This document shows positions 5,113 through 55,519 of a stretch of 64,000 bases of DNA, piece by piece. The notes beneath the pieces are model-generated. The model did not search any database. It was not told the DNA's origin and worked only from the letters and a program-made list of their open reading frames with translations. The translations under genes were made by a program, and so were the position numbers. The stretch's first letter is position 1. Each line of letters starts with the position of its first letter. The DNA lies in the sequence record NC_070650.1; one strand, written 5' to 3'.

Positions 5113-5149
5113 GGCATAGGAGGAGGCTTTCGCCTCCTCCTTTTATGCG
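5113..5149. terminator. Bidirectional terminator between convergent genes; variant of dispersed hairpin element
   Basis: GGCATA-GGAGGAGGC-TTTC-GCCTCCTCC-TTTTATGC; contains the stop codon of 5143..6393. Confidence 0.85.
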
Positions 5150-6393
5150 GTCACTAATTCAATTCTTTTAATATCCATTCTTCTTACTTCGGCATAGGTT
5201 CTTGGTTGCGGACCAACTAAACTGTTGTTAACAATCCCAGAACTACTAGCAGATACGGTATGTCGGGTCGATTGGTCAACAAGATAACCGTCAATAACGA
5301 CGACATAATCATCGATTTCTTTTTCTACTACGTATTCAGCTAATCTACCCATATTAACGCGCATGGGCTCGGTGGGGGGCGTATCAGACTGAATATAAAC
5401 CCCAGGTAACCCAGTGGGTTGCATCGCAGCATATTCCACAACAACGTTTGTTGCGTCCACTACGATTAAAAAAGTTTGGGGTGAATTCAACATTTTTGTA
5501 ATAGTGTCGTCAGATAAGAAAATATCGAGGTTAACGCGATCTGGGTTATGGTCTGATTCGTAAGGCACATAAACATCGGACCAGTCGATATAGTTTCTAG
5601 AATCAAAATAGCGTGAAACCAAATCCATATTTCGGGTATTGATTTTCAACATTCGATTACCGACAACATCATAATTGTTATCCAGGGCAAACAAATATCC
5701 CATCCAGGATAACAACACCGTTTTTCCGAATAAATCAACGTTTGTTTTGACGTACACTGATTCATAACTCGGCACGTCTGGCTCGGGGTCAACCACCATG
5801 TCTGAGGTGATGTCCACTTGGGTAATTGAACCGATACCCGAAAAATCAAGAAAACCCACTAATGGCTTATTTGCTTTACGTGCTGAAATGACACCATCAA
5901 GGACGTAGACACCATCTGAGGTGCTGGATATCCGATGACAAAACCCATTGACGGTCGCAATACAATTTTGCTCTACATTGCTGTAGTTTACTCCGGCCTT
6001 AGATAAAAGAATATCTACCTGTTGGTCGTAATCTAAAACGGCATCTGGGGATTTGGTGTGGTCACTTGGTTTTGATTTGAATCCCCAATAAAATGCGTCT
6101 ACATGGCGGACGGTCGTAGTACCCTCAACCAGAACGCTATAGGTTACTGGAAGTGACGTATTGCCGATTTGACCTAGCCACGTAACAAAAGTAATTGTCA
6201 ATACTCTGAGATAATCTGGCAAATCATCGAAGTCAACCGTAGCCGCGGAACTGTACGCCGGATTCGTAACGGTCGCTTTTATCTCCGAGTAAGTATTGTA
6301 CACTTGATACAGGGGAATGGTGGATAAATCGATGGACTTCCATTCGACACCACCCCCCTTGACACGGGCGATAGCGCTAACGTATGTATACAT
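5143..6393 (-). CDS. Conserved virion structural protein
   Basis: 416-aa ORF, beta-rich, in tail module; MYTYVSAIAR start typical of phiKZ-like structural family (recalled). Confidence 0.6.
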   Translation of the reverse strand: MYTYVSAIARVKGGGVEWKSIDLSTIPLYQVYNTYSEIKATVTNPAYSSAATVDFDDLPDYLRVLTITFVTWLGQIGNTSLPVTYSVLVEGTTTVRHVDAFYWGFKSKPSDHTKSPDAVLDYDQQVDILLSKAGVNYSNVEQNCIATVNGFCHRISSTSDGVYVLDGVISARKANKPLVGFLDFSGIGSITQVDITSDMVVDPEPDVPSYESVYVKTNVDLFGKTVLLSWMGYLFALDNNYDVVGNRMLKINTRNMDLVSRYFDSRNYIDWSDVYVPYESDHNPDRVNLDIFLSDDTITKMLNSPQTFLIVVDATNVVVEYAAMQPTGLPGVYIQSDTPPTEPMRVNMGRLAEYVVEKEIDDYVVVIDGYLVDQSTRHTVSASSSGIVNNSLVGPQPRTYAEVRRMDIKRIELVTA

Positions 6394-6476
6394 GGGGTTC
6401 TTCCTGTATTTTATTTAAAAATAGTATGCATGCCACCCTTTCATTGGGGGGGTAACTCCAACGAGGATTAGCAAAT

Positions 6477-7901
6477 ATGGCAACGACCTATGCTTACCCC
6501 TACAACCCAAATGCAAATTTATCCGCTGCATTTATCACCGGGGAAACGCACACAATTACGACGGACCCATCCAGAACTTATAACTGGTTTGTTCCGTTTG
6601 CAGCCCCTTTTTTCTCAAAGGGTTTGGTATTAACACACGTTACTTCGGGGCGGGTTCTCACCCCTGGAGTGGATTTTAATTTTGGTTTGGAATATCATAT
6701 TTTCAATAGTACTGTTGCTTTTTATCCAGTCTACGGCGCTATTGTTATTATGGACAGTACTTTGATTGGTACTTTTTCCATCAGCTATTATACCCTGGGT
6801 GACCGGTACGCAATCAACGAAGCCAAAGCGCTGGCTTTGGTTGCTAATACCGCGATTGACCCAAGACAAACGTATTGGGAATCCGTTACTGATATCCCTT
6901 CTCAGTTTCCGGCATCAGACCATCAGCATGATGTATCTGATTTAACTGGCATGGCTGATGTGGTTGCCTCGATTAACGCGCTGACAGCATCACTGACCAA
7001 TGAGGGCGGTAAATGGTGGCAGGCACTCAATGAGCACCTGACCGACTATAATGACCCCCACCATGTGTTGGACATGATTCCTAGCGGTGGAACATCGATT
7101 GCTAAGGCAACACAACAGCAGGCCGAGCAGGGCACTGATAACACCGCCTATGCTACCTCTTTGCGCGTAGCGCAATATGCTGCCGCAAATATCTTACCTA
7201 CTTTGAACAATCACATCAACGCCACGGGTAACGTCCACAACCTTACGGCTGCGGACCTTAATCTTGGTAATGTTCCAAATTATGCAGCGGCCACCCAAAG
7301 CGATGTGGACAACAACATTACTCCGGATAGCTTAATTACCACGGTAAGTATTGTCCAGTACATCGTAAATACTGCCCTTCAGAACGCATCTTTGGACCAA
7401 TACCAAACCAGTACCGATGTTACAAATGCCATTCAGTCGGCGATGGGTTCAATTTCTAATTATCCACTAGCGACGGATGAATTAGCTACATTGGGTCAAG
7501 ATGCTGCTACTCTGATGACACCATACGCAACCACACTGACCATTGATGGTTATCAGATGAATACTACTCTCGGTGTGTGCGTGTTAGCTACCGAAGTTAC
7601 GGCCTATCTGGCGCAAGGTAGTATTACCGATACCTGTTTGGATATGGTTAACAGCGTGGTGTATACCTATAACACCAATACCTCGGCATGGGAGCTGAAT
7701 AGCGGGGTTCTTCCAACCACTTATCTGAATAATGGAAGAACTTATTATAATCGGGTTTCCGGAAAAGGCTTTTTGTACCGTAATAACGCGCTGGTTAACG
7801 TTACCGGAAATGCGATTAATAATGTCACGGTATCAACTAGCGCACCGCCAGTTTCCACCACGGGATATGCCGATGGGTATGTTTGGTACCAAGTGGTATA
7901 A
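6477..7901 (+). CDS. Tail fibre/baseplate-associated protein (phiKZ gp130/131-like family)
   Basis: N-terminal ~200 aa paralogous to 7915..9336 (GETHTI/NEVHTV, LTPGVDF/LTKGIDY, WESVTDIPSQFP/WENILNKPTTFP, HQHD/HIHD); H-x-NPH fibre repeats. Confidence 0.75.
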   Translation: MATTYAYPYNPNANLSAAFITGETHTITTDPSRTYNWFVPFAAPFFSKGLVLTHVTSGRVLTPGVDFNFGLEYHIFNSTVAFYPVYGAIVIMDSTLIGTFSISYYTLGDRYAINEAKALALVANTAIDPRQTYWESVTDIPSQFPASDHQHDVSDLTGMADVVASINALTASLTNEGGKWWQALNEHLTDYNDPHHVLDMIPSGGTSIAKATQQQAEQGTDNTAYATSLRVAQYAAANILPTLNNHINATGNVHNLTAADLNLGNVPNYAAATQSDVDNNITPDSLITTVSIVQYIVNTALQNASLDQYQTSTDVTNAIQSAMGSISNYPLATDELATLGQDAATLMTPYATTLTIDGYQMNTTLGVCVLATEVTAYLAQGSITDTCLDMVNSVVYTYNTNTSAWELNSGVLPTTYLNNGRTYYNRVSGKGFLYRNNALVNVTGNAINNVTVSTSAPPVSTTGYADGYVWYQVV

Positions 7902-7914
7902 TTGAGGAAGAATC

Positions 7915-9336
7915 ATGTCAACGATTACCTGGACGTACCCTGAAGACTTAACGGGGGAGGCTTCCTCTAATTTAGTCTCCAATGAAGTACATACGGTTCC
8001 ATATGAGAACACGTACGCCTTTGTAATGAACTACGGCCCCTTCTATGGGGATTCCGTAGTGATCACCAAATCTTCTGATGGAAGCATACTGACAAAAGGC
8101 ATTGACTATAAGTGTCTTTACCTGTACCCTGAGGCCGTAGCTAAATCAGGTATGCCGGTATATTCTGTTATCCAGATTCTGGATAGAACCATTGCAGAAG
8201 ACCTGAACGTAACCTATCAAGTTGTCGGTGGTATCTTTTCATCCTACGCGTATGCCCTGGATGAAATTATTGCATTGCTGCAAATCGATAACCGCAGCAT
8301 TTCTTGGGAAAATATCCTCAATAAGCCCACTACATTTCCGCCGGCACCGCACATCCATGATGCCAGCGACCTGTATGGGTTGCAGTCACTAAATGATGCC
8401 ATCAATGATCTGAAGCAGGCTATTCTTTATGGTGACGTGGCGAGCCACGACCAGATTTATGACCGCATTGCCACGGTTAAAACTCAGGTCACCACCGGAT
8501 ATACTGATGCCGATACTGCGCTACAAACGCAGATCACTCAGAATACAACCGATATTGCGACCTTAAACACCAATTTATCCGCGCAATTGACGGCCTTGTC
8601 ACAAACGCTGACATCACATACGACGAATCAGAATAACCCACACAACACTACATATGCTCAAGTAGGTGCCCCATCGATTACTTGGACCATTAACGGGGTA
8701 ACATTTAACAAGAGTATCACTTTAACGCCAGCCAACATCGGGGCGCTATCCACTTCTGCCGGTGGTACGGTCGCTGGTGCGACAACATTTAACGCCGCGC
8801 TGACTGTTGCTGGTCAGGGTAGTTGGTTGACTAAAACGGGGGTATACCAGCCTTCCGGCACCTCCGATTATAAAGTCGACGGGATTCGATTCCAAGCCAA
8901 CAGTAACCAGTATACCGACATATTCTGGTACAATACTACTGGCGGCCCACACACGGCATTTTACGTCAAAGATGGGTCTACTGTCTCTATCTTTAGAATG
9001 TGGGCGACTGGCGGGATGACCATCCCCGGGAATATGGGTGTTGGCTCTGCAGTCTATCAAACTGATGGTAACCTCACGGGTACTGCTTGGGGTGGCTTCT
9101 TATCGGATTATTTGAATAACCGATTTAACACCGTCTCCAATACCTCTGCTAGCACTTATGTCCGAGGTATCCGGTTTGGTGCTCAGCAGTCTTTCCATAA
9201 ACGTGATGGTACGGAATACGTGGCGGGTGGGGTAATGACTGCATGGGCTGACTTCGGTAACTCCGACTACTGGGTATACCTGCGCCCACTGCAATATAAC
9301 ATCAATGGCACTTGGACGACTGCGCCGTACACTTAA
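7915..9336 (+). CDS. Tail fibre (receptor-binding) protein
   Basis: phiKZ-type N-terminus, INGVTFNKSITLTPANIGAL knuckle motif, C-terminal YVRGIRFG...YLRPLQYNINGTW domain like enterobacterial P2/Mu-type fibres. Confidence 0.85.
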   Translation: MSTITWTYPEDLTGEASSNLVSNEVHTVPYENTYAFVMNYGPFYGDSVVITKSSDGSILTKGIDYKCLYLYPEAVAKSGMPVYSVIQILDRTIAEDLNVTYQVVGGIFSSYAYALDEIIALLQIDNRSISWENILNKPTTFPPAPHIHDASDLYGLQSLNDAINDLKQAILYGDVASHDQIYDRIATVKTQVTTGYTDADTALQTQITQNTTDIATLNTNLSAQLTALSQTLTSHTTNQNNPHNTTYAQVGAPSITWTINGVTFNKSITLTPANIGALSTSAGGTVAGATTFNAALTVAGQGSWLTKTGVYQPSGTSDYKVDGIRFQANSNQYTDIFWYNTTGGPHTAFYVKDGSTVSIFRMWATGGMTIPGNMGVGSAVYQTDGNLTGTAWGGFLSDYLNNRFNTVSNTSASTYVRGIRFGAQQSFHKRDGTEYVAGGVMTAWADFGNSDYWVYLRPLQYNINGTWTTAPYT

Positions 9337-9354
9337 TTAAGTCAGGATAGTTCC

Positions 9355-9885: not shown

Positions 9886-9893
9886 GAGGTATC

Positions 9894-10545: not shown

Positions 10546-10595
10546 ATAGTTGGTGATTGGAGGGGTTATCCTTCGGTCACCAACTATGTTTTATG
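10546..10595 (+). terminator. Long hairpin between endolysin and spanins
   Basis: ATAGTTGGTGA (10546-10556) / TCACCAACTAT (10577-10587) perfect 11-bp stem, then GTTTTATG. Confidence 0.6.
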
Positions 10596-11023: not shown

Positions 11024-11201
11024 CTTCAATGACCGGATGCAAATCTTTTTACGTAATAAAGACGGACAAATCCGGTTCTCCCAAAAGGATGCTACATGGC
11101 TGACTTTATTCGCAGGGGAAGCCGATAGCGTAACGCAACAAATGTCCGGATTGCAGGAACAAACTACACTGGACCGTAACCTCATCAATCAGAAAAAATA
11201 A
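10875..11201 (+). CDS. o-spanin (Rz1-like lipoprotein), overlapped with i-spanin
   Basis: Signal peptide with lipobox LTA-C20; overlaps 3' 149 nt of i-spanin in another frame. Confidence 0.85.
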   Translation: MTLLIKLSSFLILCAALTACTQKQIVEKPVVIQQSLEPVSAQLMQPHPNNFNDRMQIFLRNKDGQIRFSQKDATWLTLFAGEADSVTQQMSGLQEQTTLDRNLINQKK

Positions 11202-11238
11202 CAACATAACTGGAGGAGGCTTTCGCCTCCTCCTATGC
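11200..11238. terminator. Terminator; variant of dispersed hairpin element
   Basis: AACAACATAAC-T-GGAGGAGGC-TTTC-GCCTCCTCC-TATGC between convergent genes. Confidence 0.8.
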
Positions 11239-11328
11239 TGCGTGTAATCTATTTTAAGAAGACCAAAAATACTTTGATGTAACCGCCCAACTCTATTATA
11301 ATAACGTCGTATAATTGTTCGTAGGCAG

Positions 11329-12276: not shown

Positions 12277-12370
12277 GGTAATTCCTCTTTTACTGGAGTA
12301 AATACAAATAATGTAAAAAAATACTGGCTTGACTAATTCAATGCCCTATTACTTAGGTTTGGACCTTCCT

Positions 12371-12475
12371 GCCACGTAGTGGCGTTTATGATCTTAATAT
12401 AAAAGAGAGATCATAGAAATAAGTATATTAAGATCAGATCCGGGGATATACCTCCATGGGTATATCCCTTATATG
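12371..12475. promoter_or_regulatory. Structured divergent intergenic region with nested inverted repeats and GATC cluster
   Basis: GCCAC/GTGGC hairpin; TGATCTTAATATA (12389-12401) / TATATTAAGATCA (12424-12436); GGGATATACC/GGTATATCCC hairpin (12443-12468); four GATC within 12390-12440. Confidence 0.55.
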
Positions 12476-12577
12476 CCGTCTAAACCTAAAAGATAGGATA
12501 CTGTCAGATAATGTCCAAGCTAAAATTATATCGATGAGAAACATATTTTAGTAGCCCATCACGGTGAGTAATTAACC

Positions 12578-15071: not shown

Positions 15072-15111
15072 AACAACATATTTGGGAGGGCGAAAGCCCT
15101 CCCATTTTTTT
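15072..15111. terminator. Terminator; copy of dispersed hairpin element
   Basis: AACAACATATT-T-GGGAGGGC-GAAA-GCCCTCCC-A-T7. Confidence 0.85.
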
Positions 15112-15112
15112 G

Positions 15113-19348: not shown

Positions 19349-19756
19349 ATGTGGTTACGAAAACTCTTCATCCGGTTACTGCCCGCCCGCATTAAGCGGG
19401 CTTTTGTATTAACCGGACTATATTCTATCTTGACGAAACAGACCCAAATCAATCCTGAGGTTCTGGCGTCATTAAATGAAAGTTTACGGTTAGTATCCAA
19501 TCCCAGTAGTTTACAATTTCCAGCGATGATGGCCTATTGGCTAGACATGCCTGGATTAGCTGGATTAGACAACCCCGTTCAATTGATTGAAGAAGTAACC
19601 AATAAACTCCCTACGTATTGGAAATACGGTATCGAGTTGGATTTTAAACATGATTTGCAGGAATTAGTAAAATATATTAGGCCTGGCACTTACTTCTCAA
19701 ATATGGTGGTGCAGCCCAACGTATTCCCACATTCCGCATCATGGCATCGGACATAA
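19349..19756 (+). CDS. Hypothetical protein
   Basis: AAGGAG RBS; amphipathic N-terminus; conserved position after RNase H (recalled). Confidence 0.6.
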   Translation: MWLRKLFIRLLPARIKRAFVLTGLYSILTKQTQINPEVLASLNESLRLVSNPSSLQFPAMMAYWLDMPGLAGLDNPVQLIEEVTNKLPTYWKYGIELDFKHDLQELVKYIRPGTYFSNMVVQPNVFPHSASWHRT

Positions 19757-19795
19757 TCAACATATTGGGAGGGCTTTCGCCCTCCCTTTTATGCC
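19755..19795. terminator. Bidirectional terminator; copy of dispersed hairpin element
   Basis: AATCAACATATT-GGGAGGGC-TTTC-GCCCTCCC-TTTTATGCC. Confidence 0.85.
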
Positions 19796-19796
19796 G

Positions 19797-20669
19797 TTAA
19801 TGTTTACTAACGTATTTCTTACCAGCTTCTTCCACGGCGACCGCCAGTGCTTCGGCCGATGCACATACCAGGCCGTAGAATTCCAACATCTTCGCCAAAT
19901 TGGCTACGTGTCTAGCCAAAGCATCGATATTGCGTGGCGCAGCAATATAGGTTTTATCGGGGTCCACCAGACCGTCGATTAATTCGCCGAGCATGGTATC
20001 CAGATTACGAACAGTTTCGCTTACTGCCTGTGGTGAATGCTCACCCGACATTTTACCGAGCAGTTCATTCAGTTTGGTTTCCAGCAGTTCCCAATCACTG
20101 TTGCGCTTAATCACCTGGCGGTATTTAACTTCAACCGCATGTCCTTTAAATGATTTTGCGTGCAAATCGATGAACTGGGTTGGGTCAAATGTTTTTAGAT
20201 AATTTCCAGGGGCGATAGTGGAAATTTTCTCCGGATTATTCAATACCGAACCAACCCAGGTTTTAAACGGAATCAACCCCGAATCGTAAAACTCATCCAC
20301 AGCGTCAGCCATGCCGATAAGCAGTTCCACATATTCAAGGTAACTGACTTGCAGCCCTTCCGGTACCGGCATCTTTAATTCGACATCGTTAAGGTAGGGG
20401 CTGTTTTGTGCAGCCCGAATCACCCCACCCAAAGTTACTGCGGCGCGAAGTTGCTTTGGGGTGCTATCAAATAGAGTAGAAATATATTCGGTAGTGGTGC
20501 CCCAGAGTTTTTTCAACTGCTCTGCCAACTTCTTATGAACGAAGTTGACTTTGAGTGCTTCCGTGGAAATATTGCGTCCCACGGTAGGGAGTTGAAGGTA
20601 GGCGTTACTACCAATCACTTTAGAATCCCGGATGATATCCGGTAGCGTAGAACGAAATTGATAAGCCAT
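19797..20669 (-). CDS. Probable internal head (ejection) protein
   Basis: 290 aa, helical; N-terminal ISTEAL putative prohead-protease site; VPEGLQVSYLEY motif. Confidence 0.55.
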   Translation of the reverse strand: MAYQFRSTLPDIIRDSKVIGSNAYLQLPTVGRNISTEALKVNFVHKKLAEQLKKLWGTTTEYISTLFDSTPKQLRAAVTLGGVIRAAQNSPYLNDVELKMPVPEGLQVSYLEYVELLIGMADAVDEFYDSGLIPFKTWVGSVLNNPEKISTIAPGNYLKTFDPTQFIDLHAKSFKGHAVEVKYRQVIKRNSDWELLETKLNELLGKMSGEHSPQAVSETVRNLDTMLGELIDGLVDPDKTYIAAPRNIDALARHVANLAKMLEFYGLVCASAEALAVAVEEAGKKYVSKH

Positions 20670-25862: not shown

Positions 25863-26609
25863 ATGGCCGGAGATCGTTTACTGGTTGATTTAGATTCTAT
25901 CTTGGATTTTAGATTATCCACCCTGGCCATTCTCAATGACGAGTACGCCAGTACTTTAATTGGAAATCCGAAATACATTGATAGAACCAGAGATGATGAG
26001 TTCTATTTGGCTGGAGGTATTTCACATACCGAATACCTTATGACGTATGGTAATCGAGGGATTGATTTCAAACACCACGTGGCCAAACCCACCGGTATTT
26101 TTATGTTGTTGGGTAAAATCATTTCTGAGCGTTTGGTTCGTTCTGAAGCACCTTTATCAGAACGAAAATTTTATATTGAAATAAACGTTTATCCATTTAG
26201 ACTCAATGAGGATGCTTGCAGGTCTATCGCAAATGCAGTAGCCATTTATCTGGATACACAACTCTACATCGAGACGGTATCCTATTCCCCAACCCAACTT
26301 ACCCCCAACTTAATTCGCGATACTTATAGTGACGTTGTGCTCTATGATTTCAATGAGTGGTATGTCGCTAATCACTTAACCGTCCCGGGTATCTTCATGC
26401 CGGAAGTTAGGTTTCATACTCCGGCAATTGCCAGAGGTAAGCGAGTTAATGAAATGGACCAGGATATTTTGCGGGAAGTTGTCGATACCACGGGTTCACT
26501 GAACCCATTTGAAGTGACCATGTACGAGTTATCAGATAACTTGTCGCTTCGGTATGAAGACACCCGTTTCTTTACAATAGAAACTGCTTCCAAACCGGTT
26601 GGGGCATAA
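25863..26609 (+). CDS. Conserved protein, possible HAD-superfamily fold
   Basis: N-terminal RLLVDLDSILD resembles HAD motif I (hhhDxDxxh). Confidence 0.45.
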   Translation: MAGDRLLVDLDSILDFRLSTLAILNDEYASTLIGNPKYIDRTRDDEFYLAGGISHTEYLMTYGNRGIDFKHHVAKPTGIFMLLGKIISERLVRSEAPLSERKFYIEINVYPFRLNEDACRSIANAVAIYLDTQLYIETVSYSPTQLTPNLIRDTYSDVVLYDFNEWYVANHLTVPGIFMPEVRFHTPAIARGKRVNEMDQDILREVVDTTGSLNPFEVTMYELSDNLSLRYEDTRFFTIETASKPVGA

Positions 26610-26630
26610 GAGAGGGCAATTGCCCTCTCT
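26604..26630. terminator. Bidirectional terminator, loopless palindrome
   Basis: GCATA followed by perfect 22-bp palindrome AGAGAGGGCAATTGCCCTCTCT (26609-26630). Confidence 0.75.
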
Positions 26631-26631
26631 A

Positions 26632-27039: not shown

Positions 27040-27110
27040 AATGGAGGAACTCCTTGTAGAAAATAGGGTCTCTACACTATTACCTGCAACATACTAAAAT
27101 AATTAACATC

Positions 27111-27118
27111 TATATTAC
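27111..27118 (+). promoter_or_regulatory. Early promoter core TATATTAC
   Basis: Exact match to phiKZ early (virion RNAP) promoter consensus, 36 nt upstream of ATG 27155. Confidence 0.7.
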
Positions 27119-27154
27119 TATTGAGACTGATTCATAGCGTATTGGGACAACATC

Positions 27155-28257: not shown

Positions 28258-29352
28258 ATGGCGCAAAAAATAGCTTCCAGCGTATTCGCCGGCGCACCAA
28301 CAGATAACTTGAATGTTGCTGATATCTATCTCACCCCGACCGTAGATTTGTTAACCAGTTTAGCAAGCACTTTGAGTAGTGTGTTGGATAGCGTTTTTAA
28401 TTCCATCCGTACGGCGGGATTAGATTTATCGGAACTTGCCGAGCTATTGAAGTCGCTGATACCCACATCAAGTAGCTCATCCGGATCTTCATCTAGCTCG
28501 TCTCTGGCGTCTTCGACCACCACCACTACTGAAGCGGTGTCTCGTTTAAGTTCAGCCCTCGGGATTAATGTGTCGGCAATTAGCGATCTGCCGGACGAGG
28601 TTAAAAATCAAGCGGTCGCCAACCTTATTTCATTATCGGGAATCAATGTATCTACTTTAGGTACAATCACTGGCGATAGAATCAATGTTACTCCCGGGAC
28701 CAGTGCTCAGAATGCTAATGGCGTGATTAATGGGATTAATGCTGTTCTGGGAGACACCACTACTTCTGTACCCACCGTTGTCGATGGTGTGGCTCTACAG
28801 GCGTTTTTATTATCCCTTTACAACTATGCCGTTGATTACGGGTTATCCGATGCAGCCGGCACTGCGGCTTCAGCACTGAATCAATCTGCCGTGGATACCG
28901 ATACAGCATCGGATATTGTCACTGCGATGGTATCCAAGTTTCCAACTGCTGTAGGAAACAGCGATCTTGATACCATGCAAACCATTTTAAATAACACCAC
29001 CCCCGGTGCGGTAGTTGCAAAATACCCGAGTGCTGTAAACGACATTATCTCAACATACACCTTAGACTCAACTATCCCGGTTAGTGATTATCCGACGGTA
29101 TTGACTAAAATGACCGACGTATTGGGAACCATTGATTCTACCTGGGCTACGGATACTCGAGATGGCGTAACGGTAAATTCACTATCCCCATTCGATGGTT
29201 TATCTGACGGTGCCGCGGCATTATTCGCCACATCAGAAGAGCATCAGGCCACCGCATTGTTAGCACAAACTTATTCTTCGGCTAATACCGTGGAACTACT
29301 GCGAGATTTTTATCCAAACATCGCATTACTGAGTTCAACAGTACGCGCATAA
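28258..29352 (+). CDS. Virion structural protein, Ser/Thr-rich
   Basis: GAGG RBS before ATG 28258 (track 28201 runs through a hairpin); SVFAGAPTD..ADIY motif; poly-Ser/Thr linker. Confidence 0.6.
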   Translation: MAQKIASSVFAGAPTDNLNVADIYLTPTVDLLTSLASTLSSVLDSVFNSIRTAGLDLSELAELLKSLIPTSSSSSGSSSSSSLASSTTTTTEAVSRLSSALGINVSAISDLPDEVKNQAVANLISLSGINVSTLGTITGDRINVTPGTSAQNANGVINGINAVLGDTTTSVPTVVDGVALQAFLLSLYNYAVDYGLSDAAGTAASALNQSAVDTDTASDIVTAMVSKFPTAVGNSDLDTMQTILNNTTPGAVVAKYPSAVNDIISTYTLDSTIPVSDYPTVLTKMTDVLGTIDSTWATDTRDGVTVNSLSPFDGLSDGAAALFATSEEHQATALLAQTYSSANTVELLRDFYPNIALLSSTVRA

Positions 29353-29385
29353 AAGGGAGGGCGAAAGCCCTCCCAATATGTTGTT
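29347..29385. terminator. Bidirectional terminator; copy of dispersed hairpin element (reverse orientation)
   Basis: GCATAAAA-GGGAGGGC-GAAA-GCCCTCCC-AATATGTTGTT; both flanking genes' stop codons touch the element. Confidence 0.85.
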
Positions 29386-31510
29386 AATTTTTATTTGATT
29401 GTCTGGACAGGGCCTGTATAAAACGACCAGGTATATTGTTAAATGCCGCCGTGGCAAAATGAGCTACAGAGAAATAACTATCGAAATCCAACTGCGCATT
29501 TTTCCATCTGCGGGATAGGGTTTCAAATTTATACGTCCGGTCAGCCAACGATACTGATGACAGTGTGGCTAAATAATCAGAATAAGTGGTGTCATCCCCA
29601 AAGAAATACCGAAGAGTATTATCCAGCGTTTCTAAAGGGTTCAGTGATGCTGCCGACATCAAACCTTGAACTATAGGCATGTGCATGATGCTAGATAAAT
29701 CAGCAACAGAAAAACTGACATCAATGCCCAAGGGTTCGCCATTCTGAGTCCACCCAACATTACCAACGCCTCGTGTAATCTCTAAAGAATCAATTACGCC
29801 GTAACGTACCTGTTGCCGTCCCTGATAAAACAACTCACACATGAATGGTCGGTCATAAGACGATGGACCTGTGGAACGAGGTAACGCCCCACATAACAGA
29901 CCGGCGAGAGGAACAAATAAATTCTGAAATCTAGAATATTTATCTCCCGACCACGAACGCAATTGAATTTGAAAATTCGCTTTAGGCAAATTGACGATCG
30001 TTGATTCCCAATCCTTAGGCAAGTCAGCTAAGCCGTTACCAATCAGCACCCCCAACCCACCAACACCTATCGCTGAAGCACCACCCTGGATGAAATCACC
30101 TACTGCCCCGACTATCCCTTCTACGGTGTTTGCGATTGCCCCGTCACCTAAGTTACCCCCGGCAACGTTGAATTGGAATTTCCGCTTAGCAGAAGAAGCT
30201 GAGTTAATAGCGGAAGCCAAACCCGATTCAGATACGGAAGTCGATATCGATTCTGAAATGGTGCCGATATTCTCCACTCGATAGGTAATCCATGCAGAAC
30301 CTTCCCGAGCTTCAGCTTGTAAGTGTTCAAATACCCCACGTACCCCAGAACCCACATCGGGATCTGCAGTGGTCGTTGATTGACCCCCCCACCACGAACC
30401 GGCCTGTTCTGGCGCCTCATTAGTGGCAGTATTCTGTTCCCCAGGTTTGGTACCCGTAGTAGCAACAGTCGTTCCGGCAGAATCAGTGGAGAAGTCCGCA
30501 CCGGATGTGGAGGTACTGCTGGTTGAGAGGTTAGCCGTTTCAGCACCCTCAGCACCCATGTTAGTACTTAAGTAATCTTCAACATAAGCCTGAAGAGTTC
30601 TCGAACTACCCACGCCGTCGGTTAAATCAATCTTGGTTCTTCCTTCATCAATTGCTTTTAACTTGTTACTTAAATCAGAGGCCGATGATGCGGCATCCAG
30701 TACTTCACCCATTTTGCGATAATACCGGTCGGCGTACATCTGTGCTCTGCGTGATACCGCGTAAATGTTAACCCCGGCATAACCTTCATTGGTTGATGTC
30801 CAGTTTTGAGGTAACATTCTTTTGACAATATCATTTTGGGAGGTTGGAATATAGCTGGTATTTTGAGCGCTCTGAGCGGCTGATAAGTTATCGTAACGGT
30901 CCATCTGTGGGGCCAAAGCGATACCTATGTTTGCCGCCAACGTGTTTAGCATCGCCTGATATGCGTTCCAATATAGTGGCATGGTTGGTTTTAAATACGC
31001 AAAACGAGATGCTGGCGCACCAACCCAATAGCGAATTAATCCCGCCGCAGTGTTGATCAATTGGACGGGTAATGATAATACAGACCCAGTAAAATAACCG
31101 AGTTTCCACATCAGCCCTTTATCACGCCCTTTCCTTACAAGTGAGCTGAGGTTGGCATCGTAGAAAGAGCCGAAAAAACCAGTTAACGAGTTATATTCAG
31201 GAACTCCGAATCGCAAATGGACTCGTTGTTGGTTATCATCGAATACTTCAGAATAAAACCTTCCCTGCCCATTACCTATGCCGAACAGATTTTTTACTTT
31301 ACGGTCAGCATAGCGAGTAAATTGTGGAAGCGGGTTAATGACCAACGCCTCCCCAAGTCCTGTGGCTGTATATTTCCATTTTGCGGTGGTGTAAAAACGC
31401 CGCTTTGCGTCTTCCTCATCTATGGCTTTTTTAGGGAGCATGAAGCTCTGACGAATCCAGTCGGAATCAGAATAATTAAGCAAAGACGACGCGCTGCTGG
31501 TACTTGCCAT
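29384..31510 (-). CDS. Baseplate hub/tail-tube-initiator-like protein (phiKZ gp182-like)
   Basis: KYTATGLG...INPLPQFTRYAD, GQGRFYSEVFDDN, FGVPEYNSL, ITRGVGNVGW motifs; follows tape-measure gene. Confidence 0.7.
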   Translation of the reverse strand: MASTSSASSLLNYSDSDWIRQSFMLPKKAIDEEDAKRRFYTTAKWKYTATGLGEALVINPLPQFTRYADRKVKNLFGIGNGQGRFYSEVFDDNQQRVHLRFGVPEYNSLTGFFGSFYDANLSSLVRKGRDKGLMWKLGYFTGSVLSLPVQLINTAAGLIRYWVGAPASRFAYLKPTMPLYWNAYQAMLNTLAANIGIALAPQMDRYDNLSAAQSAQNTSYIPTSQNDIVKRMLPQNWTSTNEGYAGVNIYAVSRRAQMYADRYYRKMGEVLDAASSASDLSNKLKAIDEGRTKIDLTDGVGSSRTLQAYVEDYLSTNMGAEGAETANLSTSSTSTSGADFSTDSAGTTVATTGTKPGEQNTATNEAPEQAGSWWGGQSTTTADPDVGSGVRGVFEHLQAEAREGSAWITYRVENIGTISESISTSVSESGLASAINSASSAKRKFQFNVAGGNLGDGAIANTVEGIVGAVGDFIQGGASAIGVGGLGVLIGNGLADLPKDWESTIVNLPKANFQIQLRSWSGDKYSRFQNLFVPLAGLLCGALPRSTGPSSYDRPFMCELFYQGRQQVRYGVIDSLEITRGVGNVGWTQNGEPLGIDVSFSVADLSSIMHMPIVQGLMSAASLNPLETLDNTLRYFFGDDTTYSDYLATLSSVSLADRTYKFETLSRRWKNAQLDFDSYFSVAHFATAAFNNIPGRFIQALSRQSNKN

Positions 31511-48051: not shown

Positions 48052-48055
48052 GGTA

Positions 48056-48095
48056 GTCAACATATCGGGAGGGCGAAAGCCCTCCCTTTTATGTC
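48056..48095 (+). terminator. Terminator; copy of dispersed hairpin element
   Basis: GTCAACATATC-GGGAGGGC-GAAA-GCCCTCCC-TTTTATGTC. Confidence 0.85.
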
Positions 48096-48103
48096 GTGAG
48101 ACT

Positions 48104-50421: not shown

Positions 50422-50522
50422 TAACTGGCATGTAGGGTAGTAAAATAATACCCACCGCATACGTAATGTGCGGAAACACCAATTTACTTGTTCATGATAT
50501 CAACCCACCTGGAGATTTAACA

Positions 50523-50972: not shown

Positions 50973-50995
50973 TTCAGCGGCCTGGCGAAATACCG

Positions 50996-51042
50996 GCATG
51001 GGGTCTTCGGGCCCCATGCATGGCTGACTGGTTTCTTTTTTT
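50996..51042 (+). terminator. cUUCGg hairpin with downstream U-tract
   Basis: GCATGGGGTC-TTCG-GGCCCCATGC then GTTTCTTTTTTT. Confidence 0.7.
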
Positions 51043-51066
51043 ATTTAACGACAATGGAATTCAATC

Positions 51067-51786
51067 ATGAGTGCAGATGAACAAAATGTAACCGTATCTG
51101 GTACTGATGTGAACGTTGATACTGCAGGCCGACTTGAGGTATCCGGCGACCACCTTGAGGTGGCGTCCCAAGGCGTGGATGTCGGCATCGCTCCGCAAAG
51201 TGATGACAAGTCACTGACCATCGATGTAGACCCCTTCGATACCGACCCGGTTGGGACAGTGAATGCAATCACTGACGCTTTCCGTGCTGTGAACTCTGAC
51301 GCAGGGGTGGACGCGAGCGCAAATGCGACCAATGATGCCACCGCCGACCCCACATCCGGGGAAGACGGTTTGACCGACGAAGACAAAGAAATGGTCTCTC
51401 TCGAACTGACCCCGCTGGACTTCATGATCCGCATGCTCGGCATCGACCTGGCTATGGCGCAGATTTATCCTGAGCCGATCTACCTGGCCACGGATGCGGA
51501 TGCTTCCGACCTCCTGGCCCGCGAAGGACTGCAATACAGTTTCGACGCCAACCGAAGCCTATATCTGTGCGGCATGGCCGATTCTTCTATTGAAGCCACA
51601 CTCAAAGACCCCGATCTGCGGGTACTGGCACTGCGCGCCATCAAATTCAAATACCGCCGCTTTGACCAGCCGGTTGATGATGCAGTAAAAGCAGTTACTG
51701 CGGCATTACGTAAACAACAACACGATATCGCCGCCGCTCAGGCTGCCGAAGCAGCAGCTCATAATTCCGTGGCCGGTCCACAATAA
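51067..51786 (+). CDS. Acidic hypothetical protein
   Basis: Asp/Val/Thr-rich N-terminal ~125 aa, globular C-terminal half; GC-rich codon usage. Confidence 0.65.
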   Translation: MSADEQNVTVSGTDVNVDTAGRLEVSGDHLEVASQGVDVGIAPQSDDKSLTIDVDPFDTDPVGTVNAITDAFRAVNSDAGVDASANATNDATADPTSGEDGLTDEDKEMVSLELTPLDFMIRMLGIDLAMAQIYPEPIYLATDADASDLLAREGLQYSFDANRSLYLCGMADSSIEATLKDPDLRVLALRAIKFKYRRFDQPVDDAVKAVTAALRKQQHDIAAAQAAEAAAHNSVAGPQ

Positions 51787-51789
51787 TCG

Positions 51790-51817
51790 AGTGGAGGGCG
51801 TTGTCCCTCCACTTATG
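51790..51817 (+). terminator. Hairpin terminator
   Basis: AGTGGAGGG-CGTTGT-CCCTCCACT-TATG. Confidence 0.6.
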
Positions 51818-51836
51818 TCATTTAGGGGATAATCTC

Positions 51837-52265
51837 ATGATTTTGTATACTGCACAAATATCGCAATATCGTGGGTTAAAGGAAGCAAACATCCCGTACA
51901 TAGATACCACCATTAAGTCGGGAGATAAATATCTCGCCCCTTCTTGGGAAATGGTTTCTAGACATAAAGCAGGAACCTTGACGGACCAAGGATACATGGA
52001 TTTGTATTTACCGATGATGCGTGCAAGTTATAAACGTCACGATTCTCATTGGCGAAAAATAGCCTTGATGGACAAAGTAGCACTACTCTGTTACTGCCCC
52101 CATGGCGTACACGGCCCTGACGAGAAACCAAATTTTTGCCATCGTTTTTCGCTAGTTGGAATATTTGAACGCATCTGCAAACATAACGGTATTCCATTCA
52201 CATATGCAGGTGAGTGGGTACGTGGTGAAACGATAATGGTGAGGTTGCCGAATTGGTTAACCTAG
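51837..52265 (+). CDS. DUF488/YeaO-like protein
   Basis: MILYT start, LAPSWEMV, ALLCYC and FCHR motifs typical of DUF488 family (recalled); start ATG 51837 (track 51801 inside hairpin). Confidence 0.65.
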   Translation: MILYTAQISQYRGLKEANIPYIDTTIKSGDKYLAPSWEMVSRHKAGTLTDQGYMDLYLPMMRASYKRHDSHWRKIALMDKVALLCYCPHGVHGPDEKPNFCHRFSLVGIFERICKHNGIPFTYAGEWVRGETIMVRLPNWLT

Positions 52266-52281
52266 AAAGAGGTATGTAGGA

Positions 52282-52659
52282 ATGGATGAGCTTTTAACGG
52301 CGCTGGCTGGATTAACTGGAAATGATCCTACCACAGTTCTTGCCACTCCAGGTTGGGCTCTGCGAGATGACCTGCGCAACATTCATGCGCTGGCAGTAAA
52401 GCACTGCACCCAAATTGATGTGGATAAAGTGATAGTACCCCCACAGGCTTTTCAGTTGCTGCGTAAAAATGGATACGATATTAGGATAGCACGAGAAGCA
52501 AACATTGTCATGTCGGCAACTCTGTACACGTCTGCTGGAGTATTTGTGCTGTATCAAAACACAAATATACTTCATAATTTCGTAAATATCCACAACCCCC
52601 AGACAACCATGAAAAAACCATCATGGGTACGGCGGTGGCTTGGTGGGATTACCGCATAA
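52282..52659 (+). CDS. Hypothetical protein with C-terminal amphipathic tail
   Basis: 125 aa; ends KKPSWVRRWLGGITA. Confidence 0.6.
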   Translation: MDELLTALAGLTGNDPTTVLATPGWALRDDLRNIHALAVKHCTQIDVDKVIVPPQAFQLLRKNGYDIRIAREANIVMSATLYTSAGVFVLYQNTNILHNFVNIHNPQTTMKKPSWVRRWLGGITA

Positions 52660-52693
52660 AAGGGAGGGCGAAAGCCCTCCCCAATATGTTGTT
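52654..52693. terminator. Terminator; copy of dispersed hairpin element (reverse orientation)
   Basis: GCATAAAA-GGGAGGGC-GAAA-GCCCTCCC-C-AATATGTTGTT; differs from 29347-29385 by one inserted C. Confidence 0.85.
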
Positions 52694-52720
52694 TCTTTTA
52701 TTTTTGTAAAAACGTGAAAC

Positions 52721-52744
52721 AAAAAAATTATAAACGTATATAAC
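52721..52744 (+). promoter_or_regulatory. Early promoter variant (A-tract + CG-TATATAAC)
   Basis: AAAAAAA-TTATAAACG-TATATAAC; same architecture as 48104 and 50398 promoters with one core mismatch. Confidence 0.65.
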
Positions 52745-52812
52745 TTTCGGGACTAGGTGAGTAGATAATCTTCTACGACTATTAATTCAATCAACAATCT
52801 GGAGTATAGCTC

Positions 52813-53007
52813 ATGTTTAATTCAATCAAAACTTTCGTTAAAAACAACAAAACTGCAATTGCTGTCGTAGGTGCCGTTGCCGTGGTGGGTGGCGTAGGCG
52901 CAGCAGTTTATTTCCAAAAGCTCCACACGGGTAAAGTGTTGGAACAAGTTGGTGATGTGGTAGACGGTGCCACTGAAGCTGCGGCTGAAGCAGTAAAAGA
53001 AGCGTAA
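52813..53007 (+). CDS. Small single-pass membrane protein (basic N-term, Gly-rich TM, acidic tail)
   Basis: GGAG RBS; TM AIAVVGAVAVVGGVGAAVYF. Confidence 0.75.
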   Translation: MFNSIKTFVKNNKTAIAVVGAVAVVGGVGAAVYFQKLHTGKVLEQVGDVVDGATEAAAEAVKEA

Positions 53008-53040
53008 CATAAAACGGGGGGTGGTAATACCATCCCCCTT
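53008..53040 (+). terminator. Hairpin between microprotein genes
   Basis: CATAAAAC-GGGGGGTGGT-AAT-ACCATCCCCC-TT. Confidence 0.5.
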
Positions 53041-53084
53041 CTGAGATACCCGGTTATCATTACCCTCTTTCTTAGGATAGTATC

Positions 53085-53300
53085 ATGAACAAATTCATTC
53101 GCGTGGTTGCTGCGGGGGTTGCTGGGCACGTTGTAGGTAGCCTTACCGGTGCTGGGGTAGCTATTGGGGTTGATGCCATAGCATCACAAACCACGAACAA
53201 TCCGGATAAACGTACCACCGCGGCTATGGTCGGGGGTACATTAACATACTGGATTGCCGGAGTAAAGACGGCAATCCATGTTTATAAGCATTTTGAATAA
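53085..53300 (+). CDS. Small glycine-zipper membrane protein
   Basis: AGGA RBS; GxxGxxxGxxxG helix then second hydrophobic helix. Confidence 0.7.
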   Translation: MNKFIRVVAAGVAGHVVGSLTGAGVAIGVDAIASQTTNNPDKRTTAAMVGGTLTYWIAGVKTAIHVYKHFE

Positions 53301-53332
53301 TTTAATAAATTGAAGATACGAGGGTAAAGACC

Positions 53333-53539
53333 ATGGGTATTAAGAAAATAATTGTGGGCGGCATTGTAGGCGGTATTGCCGGAGGAGAAGCCGGAAAATA
53401 CGTTCATAAAACCGCCATCGAGTTGGGCTGCAGCGAACGTAAAGCGGCGTGGGCTGGTATTCTTACCTCGGTAGTGGTAGGTACGATTACGGGCGATGTC
53501 GTGCGCAATAAACTTTTAAAGAACTGGGATAACCAGTAA
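53333..53539 (+). CDS. Small glycine-zipper membrane protein
   Basis: GGIVGGIAGGEAG zipper and AAWAGILTSVVVGTITG helix. Confidence 0.7.
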   Translation: MGIKKIIVGGIVGGIAGGEAGKYVHKTAIELGCSERKAAWAGILTSVVVGTITGDVVRNKLLKNWDNQ

Positions 53540-53572
53540 TTTTTTAAACCATCAAAAAGTGAGGAAAACCTT

Positions 53573-53827
53573 ATGGAAGTATTAGTATTCGCATTAATTC
53601 TCGATATCATCATCGGCGTAGTTTCCTACACCTGGAAAGGACGCAACGGTTTTGCCTTTTTCCTCTGGGCCTTTTTGCTGAGTCCGGTAATCGGATTCAT
53701 CATTCTGCTCTGCGTGAAAAACCTCAAAGCCGAAGCCGAAAAAGAACGGCTTCGCAAAGAAGAAAAAGAAGCCGCGGATCGTCGGCATCTGGAAACCCTG
53801 GCGATTCTATCCAATCGTCGGGACTAA
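53573..53827 (+). CDS. Small two-TM membrane protein with charged C-terminal helix
   Basis: GAGGA RBS; VLVFALILDIIIGVVSY / KGRNG / FAFFLWAFLLSPVIGFIILLCV. Confidence 0.75.
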   Translation: MEVLVFALILDIIIGVVSYTWKGRNGFAFFLWAFLLSPVIGFIILLCVKNLKAEAEKERLRKEEKEAADRRHLETLAILSNRRD

Positions 53828-53838
53828 CGCCACGCTAA

Positions 53839-53870
53839 AAAAGCCCTCTTAGAGAGAGGGCTTTTATGCC
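53839..53870. terminator. Bidirectional-type hairpin
   Basis: AAAAGCCCTCT-TAGAG-AGAGGGCTTTT-ATGCC. Confidence 0.7.
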
Positions 53871-53893
53871 CTTAATCTAAGAGAGAACCCATC

Positions 53894-54319
53894 ATGAAAA
53901 CTATTTTCAATTACATCAAAAACCACAAAATCATTTCAACCATCGCCGCAGTATTGTTGGGTGTGAGTGGTTATTTGTACGCTTCAGGCAGCGATAATAA
54001 TCAGGCCGCTATGCCGCCGGCGCCATTCCAAATCATGGCTTATTCTCAGCGTGATTTATTAAACCAGCCGTATGTGCGTTTACAGGTCACCAGTACTGCC
54101 GACGTCATCACGATTAATAACATCACTGTTAACCGCGGTAATTGCCTTTTCGAAAACCATACCCTGCCTGGGTACAATTCACCCCCAGCATTACCGACAA
54201 CCATGCGGTATGGTCAGAACAACCGCTTTGTCTTTTTCCGCTGCGATAAAGCATTAGAAGCGACCATCAGTACCAACGTCGGTACTTGGACCGTACAGTT
54301 TAACTATCCGTCACAATAA
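53894..54319 (+). CDS. Exported/membrane-anchored beta-rich protein with two Cys
   Basis: N-terminal signal/anchor; NRGNC...LPTTMRYGQ...RC...TNVGTWTVQF. Confidence 0.75.
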   Translation: MKTIFNYIKNHKIISTIAAVLLGVSGYLYASGSDNNQAAMPPAPFQIMAYSQRDLLNQPYVRLQVTSTADVITINNITVNRGNCLFENHTLPGYNSPPALPTTMRYGQNNRFVFFRCDKALEATISTNVGTWTVQFNYPSQ

Positions 54320-54330
54320 GGAACGACTCC

Positions 54331-54663
54331 ATGAGAACTATTATCATTTTTATGTTGGTGACTTTTGCATTGTTGCCCTATGTGAAGGCCACCGCAGAAC
54401 CGGGTAATATGACAATTACCCCTCGCGTTGTTTCTGACGGCCCCCGACCCATTGTTGATTACGAGATTCAGTCTTACGTCGATGGGTTGGTGGTCCAGGA
54501 TTTTTTGATGACTATTGATGGTGACTGTTGGATTCCAGCTCAGCTCCCACTCAAGCTCAATCAGGGAAGTATCGGCAAAGTACGCATTATCGGCTGCCCA
54601 ATCCAACCACTGCACGTCATTACTAATTTGGGTAGTTACGACTTCTATTTTAACAAACTGTAG
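54331..54663 (+). CDS. Exported beta-rich protein, paralogue of 53894..54319
   Basis: Signal peptide MRTIIIFMLVTFALLPYVKA; DGDC...LPLKLNQG...GC...TNLGSYDFYF. Confidence 0.7.
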   Translation: MRTIIIFMLVTFALLPYVKATAEPGNMTITPRVVSDGPRPIVDYEIQSYVDGLVVQDFLMTIDGDCWIPAQLPLKLNQGSIGKVRIIGCPIQPLHVITNLGSYDFYFNKL

Positions 54664-54689
54664 TATAGCGTCCATTCGAGGAGTGAACC

Positions 54690-54917
54690 ATGTTAATTTT
54701 TATACAAGCATATGTAAATAGTTTTTCTGTAGTACCTCCTCGACATATGGAACCCGTACCTACTGTCGAAGTTAAAATAGATGGTCATGTGGTTTATGAA
54801 TCGCATGACCTGAATGACATCATCGAGCAAGTATACGTAGAACCAAAACCAAAAACCAAATCTGGTTTCGATTTCTTTGCACAAACCACGGCACGAGCCA
54901 AACAACGTAGGGGGTAA
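54690..54917 (+). CDS. Small hypothetical protein
   Basis: GAGGAG RBS; 75 aa. Confidence 0.65.
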   Translation: MLIFIQAYVNSFSVVPPRHMEPVPTVEVKIDGHVVYESHDLNDIIEQVYVEPKPKTKSGFDFFAQTTARAKQRRG

Positions 54918-54922
54918 CAGCT

Positions 54923-55084
54923 ATGAACACATCACGTGACTGGATTTCTTTTGATACATTTGGCAAAGTTGTTGCTCTCTATTACGGCATTAAAGTCGGG
55001 CGTTTCTGCTGGCGAGTAATGAAAGAGAACATGGACTTGCGCGATGAGCTAGAAGCTCAGAAACAAAAAACCGCAACAAAATAA
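54923..55084 (+). CDS. Small 53-aa protein missing from ORF track
   Basis: AGGGGG upstream; MNTSRDWISFDTFGKVVALYYGIKVGRFCWRVMKENMDLRDELEAQKQKTATK fills the gap between neighbours. Confidence 0.6.
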   Translation: MNTSRDWISFDTFGKVVALYYGIKVGRFCWRVMKENMDLRDELEAQKQKTATK

Positions 55085-55117
55085 ATTAACCCAACATTCA
55101 ATTAAAAAGGTACTATC

Positions 55118-55321
55118 ATGTTTACTAAACTGCAAACCGTTCTGTCTACCGTATCCAACAAACAACTGATTGCTGCCGGCATCGGTGCCGCGGCATTTGG
55201 TGGCTTTGGTCTGGGGTATATTTCTGGCCGGATTCACGGCCGTAAAAAAGCGGCGGTGGTCGCCGTTGACGAAGCAGTAGTGGAGGCAGAAACTCCCGAT
55301 GCTGAAACTGTTAAAGAGTAA
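55118..55321 (+). CDS. Small single-pass membrane protein, same architecture as 52813..53007
   Basis: AAGG RBS; TM LIAAGIGAAAFGGFGLGYI; acidic tail. Confidence 0.75.
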   Translation: MFTKLQTVLSTVSNKQLIAAGIGAAAFGGFGLGYISGRIHGRKKAAVVAVDEAVVEAETPDAETVKE

Positions 55322-55436
55322 AGAGCTGGTGTGGTTCTTGGCTGGGGTTGCTGTCGGAGGGTGGGCGGTTGTAATAACTTACGATATCGCCAACAAACGA
55401 ACCAAACCCCCAGCTGAGGAAGAACCCGCAGAGTAA
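55299..55436 (+). CDS. Small 45-aa single-pass membrane protein missing from ORF track
   Basis: MLKLLKSKELVWFLAGVAVGGWAVVITYDIANKRTKPPAEEEPAE; GGAGG upstream; ends right before a palindromic terminator. Confidence 0.6.
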   Translation: MLKLLKSKELVWFLAGVAVGGWAVVITYDIANKRTKPPAEEEPAE

Positions 55437-55438
55437 TT

Positions 55439-55490
55439 GAGCTAGAGGCGTACGCCTCTAGCTCTTCTCATTTCGTTTATTTTTTTTATT
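55439..55490 (+). terminator. Terminator, loopless palindrome
   Basis: Perfect 26-bp palindrome GAGCTAGAGGCGTACGCCTCTAGCTC (55439-55464) followed by T-rich tract. Confidence 0.7.
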
Positions 55491-55492
55491 TC

Positions 55493-55519
55493 GGCATAAA
55501 AGGGAGGCCGAAGCCTCCC
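55493..55519 (-). terminator. Terminator of tube/sheath operon; variant of dispersed element
   Basis: On minus strand GGGAGGC-TTCG-GCCTCCC-TTTTATGCC. Confidence 0.8.

Follow-up and report, generated by a model that had tools for sequence, protein, structure and literature searches.

TATG-tailed palindromic hairpins as probable bidirectional intrinsic terminators of the Klebsiella jumbo phage vB_KvM-Eowyn

Introduction

The transcript ends of the jumbo phage phiKZ have been mapped by Oxford Nanopore Technologies (ONT)-cappable-seq (Putzeys et al., 2024, Microlife, PMC10914365). In that study, 61 intrinsic terminators with the shared motif 5'-BCCYCCCCHWWDGGGRRGGBYTTATKYYGT-3' were reported, together with six bidirectional terminator regions between convergent genes and with terminators in 5' untranslated regions (5'-UTRs). 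In phage 201phi2-1, motif A (n=59) was described by its authors as strongly like the phiKZ motif, 15 terminators were bidirectional, and a reporter terminator trap confirmed eight strong mapped terminators selected so as to represent the motifs; the authors treat antitermination and not the tail (PMC11512511). Here, a dispersed element composed of a GC-rich hairpin with outward-facing TATG tails is described in Klebsiella phage vB_KvM-Eowyn. The 64,000-nt stretch in which it was recognized (the window) is identical, as an exact string, to positions 124001-188000 of the 265,389-bp Eowyn genome. Phages of the phiKZ-like nucleus-forming jumbo type share a conserved intrinsic (factor-independent) terminator, and the element is very probably the form that this terminator takes in the Eowyn lineage. 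The terminator kind is already known from phiKZ, and the Eowyn element adds a member to it.

TATG is also the core of the phiKZ late promoter, as had been stated correctly in a preliminary description of the window made from the sequence alone. The G of this core lies at +1, and all four bases are needed in vitro but are not sufficient alone. In a structure published in 2026, the non-template TATG is bound by the core beta-like subunit GP123, and not by the sigma-like GP68, in a pocket under the beta-lobe; termination is unmentioned in that paper.

Results

Eowyn and its relatives

The Eowyn annotation includes a nuclear shell protein, the tubulin PhuZ and several split RNA polymerase (RNAP) beta/beta'-like genes, which identifies Eowyn as a phiKZ-like nucleus-forming jumbo phage. 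Over a 7-kb piece of the window, its relatives are the Serratia/Klebsiella phages KpHz_2 (97.5% identity) and KpGz_1 (85.5% identity). The Eowyn major head protein matched ~220 phiKZ-like phages, and all matches outside its own group were below 60% identity. A scan of the whole window with Rfam returned no family at its gathering score.

Hairpin copies in the window

The stem GGGAGGGC-N4-GCCCTCCC occurs exactly at window positions 15084, 19767, 29355, 48067 and 52662, and a copy with two mismatches lies at 26610. The five exact copies compare with 0.01 expected, and six matches were reached in 0 of 100 shuffles. Variant copies carry the stem GGAGGAGGC at 5119 and 11212 and the stem GGGAGGC at 55502, so that the dispersed near-identical copies and variants first listed in the preliminary description were all recovered. 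The copies at 29343-29386 and 52650-52693, previously said to differ by one base, are indeed distinguished by a single inserted C across a core of ~36 nt. The loop is GAAA or TTTC and does not depend on flank orientation. Outward TATG on both flanks, earlier ascribed to the element in general, was observed in six of the nine copies; the copies at 15084, 26610 and 55502 carry it on one side only. Six more members are located in the window (Table 1).

Stems of the elements are 7-10 bp long with loops of 4 nt. Folding energies of the RNAs lie between -14 and -28 kcal/mol, with z scores of -3.4 to -8.2, excepting the tail-less strand of the copy at 55490, which is the sole fold not well below its shuffled controls. 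Six of the nine copies have the stop codon of one or both flanking genes within ~12 nt, and four of the nine are wedged tightly between two convergent stop codons.

Table 1. Putative terminators and related hairpin-and-tail units in the window. Positions are those of the window.
Feature	Position	Strand	Gene context	Hairpin	Tails (strand)
Bidirectional terminator	5110..5152	.	between convergent gp156 (+, ends 5111) and gp157 (-, ends 5143)	stem GGAGGAGGC, loop TTTC; fold -26 to -28 kcal/mol	TTTTATGCGG (+), TATGCCGTT (-)
One-way member, different stem	10549..10595	+	tandem + genes gp161/gp162	long hairpin	directly TATGTTTTATG
Bidirectional terminator	11200..11242	.	gp162 (+) / gp163 (-)	stem GGAGGAGGC	TATGCTGCG (+), AGTTATGTTGTT (-)
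Small hairpin with tail	12370..12393	+	in 301-bp divergent region upstream of gp164		TTTATG
Hairpin with tail	12442..12480	+	divergent region	GGGATATACC..GGTATATCCC	TTATATGCCGTC, kept in KpGz_1
Terminator	15072..15112	.	gp164 (+) / gp165 (-)	stem GGGAGGGC, loop GAAA	AAATATGTTGTT (-), plain T-tract ATTTTTTTG (+)
Bidirectional terminator	19755..19798	.	gp169 (+, ends 19756) / gp170 (-, ends 19797)		TTTTATGCCGTT (+), AATATGTTGAT (-)
Terminator	26599..26631	-	gp177 (+) / gp178 (-)	stem GAGAGGGC, palindromic loop AATT	TATG tail TTATGCCCC for - direction only
Bidirectional terminator	29343..29386	.	gp181 (+, ends 29352) / gp182 (-, ends 29384)		AATATGTTGTT (+), TTTTATGCGCG (-)
Two-tailed copy	48055..48098	.	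tandem + genes, after head maturation protease gp190		TTTTATGTCGT (+), GATATGTTGAC (-)
One-way member	51790..51822	+	after gp195	stem GTGGAGGGC..GTCCCTCCAC	TTATGTCATT
Two-tailed copy	52650..52693	.	tandem + genes gp197/gp198		CAATATGTTGTT (+), TTTTATGCGGTA (-)
Imperfect hairpin	53003..53038	-	between + genes	GGGGGGTGGTAATACCATCCCCC	GTTTTATGTTACG, reads on - strand
One-way member	53840..53873	+	after gp201	stem GCCCTCT..AGAGGGC	TTTTATGCCCTT
Terminator of - strand virion gene	55490..55522	-	gp207	stem GGGAGGC; loop CGAA on + (UUCG in - RNA)	TTTTATGCCGAA on -; none on +

One tail consensus on both flanks

The genome-wide motif scan proposed in the preliminary description was performed with stems closed by GC pairs, since stems extended through A-T pairs swallow part of the tail and under-count tails; folding the surroundings of each TAT[GAT] of the window with RNAfold gave too much noise for a census. 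The Eowyn genome contains 123 perfect GC-closed hairpins, 84 of which are intergenic. TATG was found 0-6 nt past the stem on 61 of 106 (58%) gene-downstream sides of the intergenic hairpins, compared with 7 of 78 for intragenic hairpins and ~3% at random positions. Alignment of 78 tails on TATG gave the consensus WW-TATG-Y(C47/T26)-Y(C37/T33)-G(64/78)-T(47/78), with an offset of 2-3 nt from stem to TATG in 56 of the 78. The right flank, TTTTATGCCG, and the left flank when read as its reverse complement, AATATGTTGTT, both represent this tail in slightly different versions. Each two-sided copy thus consists of a palindromic hairpin with one tail per transcription direction, and this arrangement explains the asymmetric conserved flanks noted earlier: the flanks are conserved, but those that had appeared different are variants of a single (W)(W)TATG-Y-Y-G-T tail.

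TATG itself occurs 1133 times on the + strand and 789 times on the - strand of Eowyn, where 1230 are expected from base composition. Because it is not avoided on the coding strand, TATG alone cannot be a stop signal. The loops of one-way members, read as transcribed in the sense direction, comprise six GNRA or UUCG loops versus two complements, which are too few to argue from. Ordinary T-tracts replace the TATG tail on some hairpins, as at window 1850-1876 (TCTTTTTTT) and 15104-15112 (ATTTTTTTG); two tail types thus coexist in Eowyn, at times on the two sides of one hairpin.

Hairpins mark gene ends

Gene context was counted over the annotated junctions of Eowyn, 25 of which are convergent and 25 divergent. 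A GC hairpin is present at 23 convergent junctions, with at least one TATG tail at 22 and tails in both directions at 15; only one of the divergent junctions has such a hairpin. The hairpins accordingly mark gene ends and not gene starts, whereas a promoter cassette would give the reverse pattern. A termination cassette specific to the phage RNAP, one of several options raised in the preliminary description, is hence the best supported of them, given this placement and the phiKZ-like architecture and tail described below.

The two convergent junctions without a hairpin are overlaps with tiny minus-strand open reading frames, gp261 (Eowyn genome 231534-231671) and gp232 (209367-209501), both outside the window. 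Terminator-type hairpins lie at 231610-231627, inside gp261, and at 209320-209339, ~27 nt from gp232; both genes may be over-annotations.

The unit at 12442..12480 is the sole hairpin with a tail at any annotated divergent junction. It is located in the spacer between gp163 and gp164 (window 12277-12577), which is unusually long at 301 bp and holds two + strand hairpin and TATG units 100-200 nt upstream of gp164. These two units may represent a 5'-UTR attenuator or a short non-coding RNA, similar to the 5'-UTR terminators of phiKZ.

Comparison with phiKZ

The phiKZ tables covered here, from the bioRxiv supplement, comprise 126 of the 149 transcription start site (TSS) rows and the terminator rows T034-T076, and the statements on mapped phiKZ ends below refer to these rows. 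The terminator rows show the same flank-stem-flank layout as in Eowyn, for example AACGACATATT-GCCCTCCC-TTCG-GGGAGGGC-TTTAT. In both phages, TTATKYYGT comes directly after a GC-rich homopurine/homopyrimidine hairpin with a 4-5-nt loop, the sequence ahead of the hairpin (AACRRCATAW-) repeats the tail in reverse complement, and bidirectional pairs lie between convergent genes. The order of major head gene, terminator and early promoter seen at phiKZ T057 also recurs in Eowyn. The differences are an inverted stem polarity (CCCTCCC...GGGAGGG in phiKZ, GGGAGGGC...GCCCTCCC in Eowyn), a different host and GC content, and a G of TATG that is more strictly kept in Eowyn.

An independent scan of 42 kb of phiKZ found the tail on 19 of 52 hairpin sides, against a background of 3%. 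In a control region of T4, the tail was found on 2 of 24 hairpin sides, near its 3% background. Within the 42-kb sample, 5 of the 19 tail sites have a mapped phiKZ 3' end 1-2 nt after the tail G. The phiKZ RNA ends as stem-NN-UAUGY(Y), so that its last base is 7-9 nt from the stem as in a classical intrinsic terminator, and the tail positions Y-G-T lie at or past the mapped RNA end.

An early-promoter-like motif, AAAATAATTAnnAnCTATATTACT, is present upstream of gp179 at window 27082-27125 (core CTATATTAC at ~27110) and resembles the phiKZ early promoter. About 12 copies occur across the Eowyn genome, one of them after the terminator of the major head gene.

Evolution of the element against KpGz_1

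An orthologous alignment with KpGz_1 spans 74 of the 84 Eowyn elements. Divergence is 13.1% in the surrounding sequence (±150 nt), 4.1% in the stems, where 12 compensatory double changes are included, 26.5% in the loops, 23% in the spacer between stem and TATG, and 15% in YYG (for example CC to TT in e43284). TATG diverges by 1.5% (4 of 272 positions) and is the slowest-evolving part of the element. The hairpin is under selection as a structure, and TATG is under purifying selection as a sequence.

Three further observations were made in this comparison. First, the 4-nt loop is exactly reverse-complemented between some Eowyn and KpGz_1 orthologues (GAAA to TTTC or the reverse, and likewise TAAT and ATTA), while stem and tails are unchanged; this was seen at window 15084-15103 and, outside the window, at Eowyn genome positions 77916 and 38492, and it looks like hairpin-mediated template-switch inversion. 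Second, the KpGz_1 orthologue of the element at Eowyn genome position 191418 is a 44-nt terminator identical to the one that follows the major head gene of KpGz_1, suggesting replacement of a whole cassette or gene conversion between terminators. Third, the 'transposase' at Eowyn genome 219712-220806, outside the window, is a TnpB (OrfB_IS605 with a Cas12f1-like TNB domain). A terminator and an early-like promoter lie upstream of this gene and a long hairpin downstream of it, and the KpGz_1 BLAST alignments do not span the two flanking hairpins, which may reflect an indel.

Breadth among jumbo phages

A scan of IMG/VR for the exact stem with a tail returned 86 loci on ~40 uncultivated jumbo-phage contigs, mostly 220-285 kb in length. 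No DNA similarity to Eowyn was detectable in these contigs. Homologues of Eowyn proteins, including PhuZ, the major head protein and DnaB, were found in 65 of 80 analysed loci at a median identity of 34%. TATG was present on the second, unsearched side in 67 of 84 cassettes. In these relatives (53% GC), the spacers are TG, TC or CT and the tails are poor in U, as in CCC-TG-TATGCCG. Other, unsearched hairpins in the same loci bear the tail on 97 of 432 sides (22%), against a background of 1.4%, with the same C-C-G-T extension.

Discussion

Bidirectional termination and its proposed mechanism

The most probable function of the Eowyn element is intrinsic termination. A GC-rich RNA hairpin followed by a TATG-Y-Y-G-T tail 2-3 nt past the stem would end transcription, and a single palindromic hairpin with a tail on each side would stop transcription arriving from both directions. 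Such a two-tailed form would be used at convergent genes or wherever read-through in the antisense direction has to be prevented. By analogy with the mapped phiKZ ends, the Eowyn RNA polymerases probably release their transcripts 1-3 nt after the tail G. We infer that the tail does the job of the U-tract, partly by sequence-specific contacts or pausing beyond U-richness. Rho-independent terminators resemble these elements in their GC-rich hairpin, in an RNA 3' end 7-9 nt past the stem and in their position at gene ends and between convergent genes; the difference is that a specific sequence stands in place of the U-tract in the TATG-tailed elements.

A stronger form of this proposal, which we regard as possible but doubtful, is that the TATG-YYG tail is more than a degenerate U-tract and is read by the phage RNAP as a sequence-specific pause or release signal. 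The contact between a GP123-type core subunit and TATG could recur during elongation, and a TATG emerging just past the hairpin might anchor or pause the enzyme and so replace the U-tract. The succession of U and G also fits the Y(-1)G(+1) consensus of the elemental pause of bacterial RNAP.

Several points weigh against the assignment as a terminator. The mapped 3' ends come from phiKZ and 201phi2-1, and the run index for Eowyn holds DNA and metagenome runs only. The precision of ends in ONT-cappable-seq is within a couple of bases, and the method by itself cannot tell termination from 3' processing. In Eowyn, 24 of the 106 sense-side hairpins have no recognisable tail, some of them with plain T-tracts. 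Sixteen tails between tandem + genes are oriented opposite to the genes, and these counter-facing tails call for antisense read-through or 3'-end pairing. Goslar, SPN3US, pEa_SNUABM_54, RSL2 and a Vibrio phage mostly have T-rich tails of the TTTTAT type, and the TATG tail is weak or absent in them. The conservation of flanks among relatives that the preliminary description had asked about holds for TATG against KpGz_1; it does not extend to these five chimalliviruses.

Conservation of the TATG tail across the whole family was considered as well and is ruled out by the five sampled chimalliviruses. Among chimalliviruses, the tail characterises a large subset rather than the whole group.

Alternative explanations

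It is very improbable, although the blindness of 3'-end mapping to termination versus processing would allow it, that the element acts mainly after transcription, with the hairpin and an outer CAUA...UAUG helix protecting mRNA 3' ends or serving a phage or host RNA-binding protein or RNase as a binding or processing site, and with the ends produced by trimming. The flanks are self-complementary, so that a released RNA 3' end can pair with the upstream CAUA, and an upstream CATA partner is present in ~38% of tailed elements between tandem genes. Most one-way elements, however, lack an upstream partner. The conserved Y-Y-G-T lies at or past the mapped RNA end in the phiKZ rows, and conserved bases in this position point to a signal in the DNA or the nascent transcript rather than to a motif of the mature RNA. 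The eight strong terminators of 201phi2-1 that were validated in a terminator trap (PMC11512511) also argue for termination. An added role as a 3'-end stabiliser or protein-binding RNA is possible alongside termination.

The preliminary description also raised a composite of terminator and late promoter. In such an element, the non-virion RNAP would re-initiate at the tail G after termination, so that transcription of tandem arrays would be restarted in the sense direction and convergent pairs would give rise to antisense RNAs. The tail TATG has the sequence of the phiKZ late-promoter core, whose G lies at +1, and it is the most conserved part of the element; plain TATG motifs are also present in the divergent promoter regions of Eowyn. 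Such a composite is nevertheless very improbable. Hairpin and tail units occur at 22 of 25 convergent junctions and at 1 of 25 divergent junctions, and where genes converge, each tail is directed into the 3' end of the gene opposite; the predicted antisense transcripts thus find no support in this arrangement, in which divergent regions are practically devoid of the unit. TATG alone is insufficient for promoter activity, and the tail G is not absolute, being A or T in some Eowyn tails and exchanged between G and A in orthologues. A hairpin-adjacent TATG is the start in none of the 126 phiKZ TSS rows, and no TSS lies within 20 nt of the 19 tail Gs in the 42-kb sample, as far as these rows extend. 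Two late TSSs in them (P049 and P075) are situated only 5-9 nt beyond a terminator tail, but the phiKZ TSSs near terminators (P049, P075, P054, P016, P023 and P041) use a separate TATG located 5-35 nt further on, and at P017, P028 and P099 an early promoter follows the terminator. The likeness of the terminator to the late promoter lies in the same tetranucleotide on the non-template strand; at gene ends, the terminator TATG follows a hairpin by 2-3 nt, and in phiKZ it marks the 3' rather than the 5' ends of RNAs.

A DNA-level element that is not tied to transcription, either a mobile palindrome like the repetitive extragenic palindromic (REP) sequences or the site of a dimeric DNA-binding protein, has next to no chance of being correct: the copies are dispersed, near-identical and palindromic, the exact 44-nt terminator copy in KpGz_1 indicates that cassettes can be copied between sites, and loops invert between orthologues, but many tails are one-sided and co-oriented with the upstream gene, stem pairs change in compensation while loops drift, 74 of 84 elements are positionally stable in the KpGz_1 alignment, and placement is almost exclusively at gene ends. 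The REP-like unit suggested in the preliminary description is likewise disfavoured by the stable orthologous copies; the only annotated transposase is the TnpB (IS605 OrfB), and no Y1/REP-associated tyrosine transposase (RAYT) was noticed in the Eowyn annotation, in which no dedicated RAYT protein search was run.

Two other known systems share features with the terminators. REP sequences and bacterial interspersed mosaic elements (BIMEs) of enterobacteria are likewise imperfect palindromes scattered between genes, frequently at the 3' ends of these; in Eowyn, the tails are directional and tied to gene orientation, and the stems show compensatory evolution. In the promoter-early stem-loop (PeSL) of T4-type phages, a sigma-70 early promoter is paired with a stem-loop, and these cassettes have been linked to gene shuffling. 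They are similar in being short repeated combinations of a hairpin and a transcription signal scattered between phage genes, and different in that the Eowyn copies keep their positions and have a terminator tail as their signal.

Implications

Within these terminators, conservation is highest at the TATG that the phage RNAP core binds at promoters, and it is kept without a U-rich tract in GC-richer relatives. The finding sharpens a question that published work left open, namely how the TATG tail works. If the tail is read as a specific signal, one four-base code would serve for starts (TATG alone) and for stops (TATG 2-3 nt past a hairpin), and a U-tract-independent class of terminator would exist in many chimalliviruses. 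Recognition of TATG by the RNAP during elongation would represent a new termination logic for a multisubunit RNAP. Such recognition would also supply orthogonal terminator parts for engineering nucleus-forming phages. For an unstudied Klebsiella jumbo phage, the 15 elements of the window and the ~60 tailed hairpins genome-wide provide a map of transcription-unit ends, and the known range of the phiKZ terminator design now includes an enterobacterial lineage as well as dozens of uncultivated jumbo phages.

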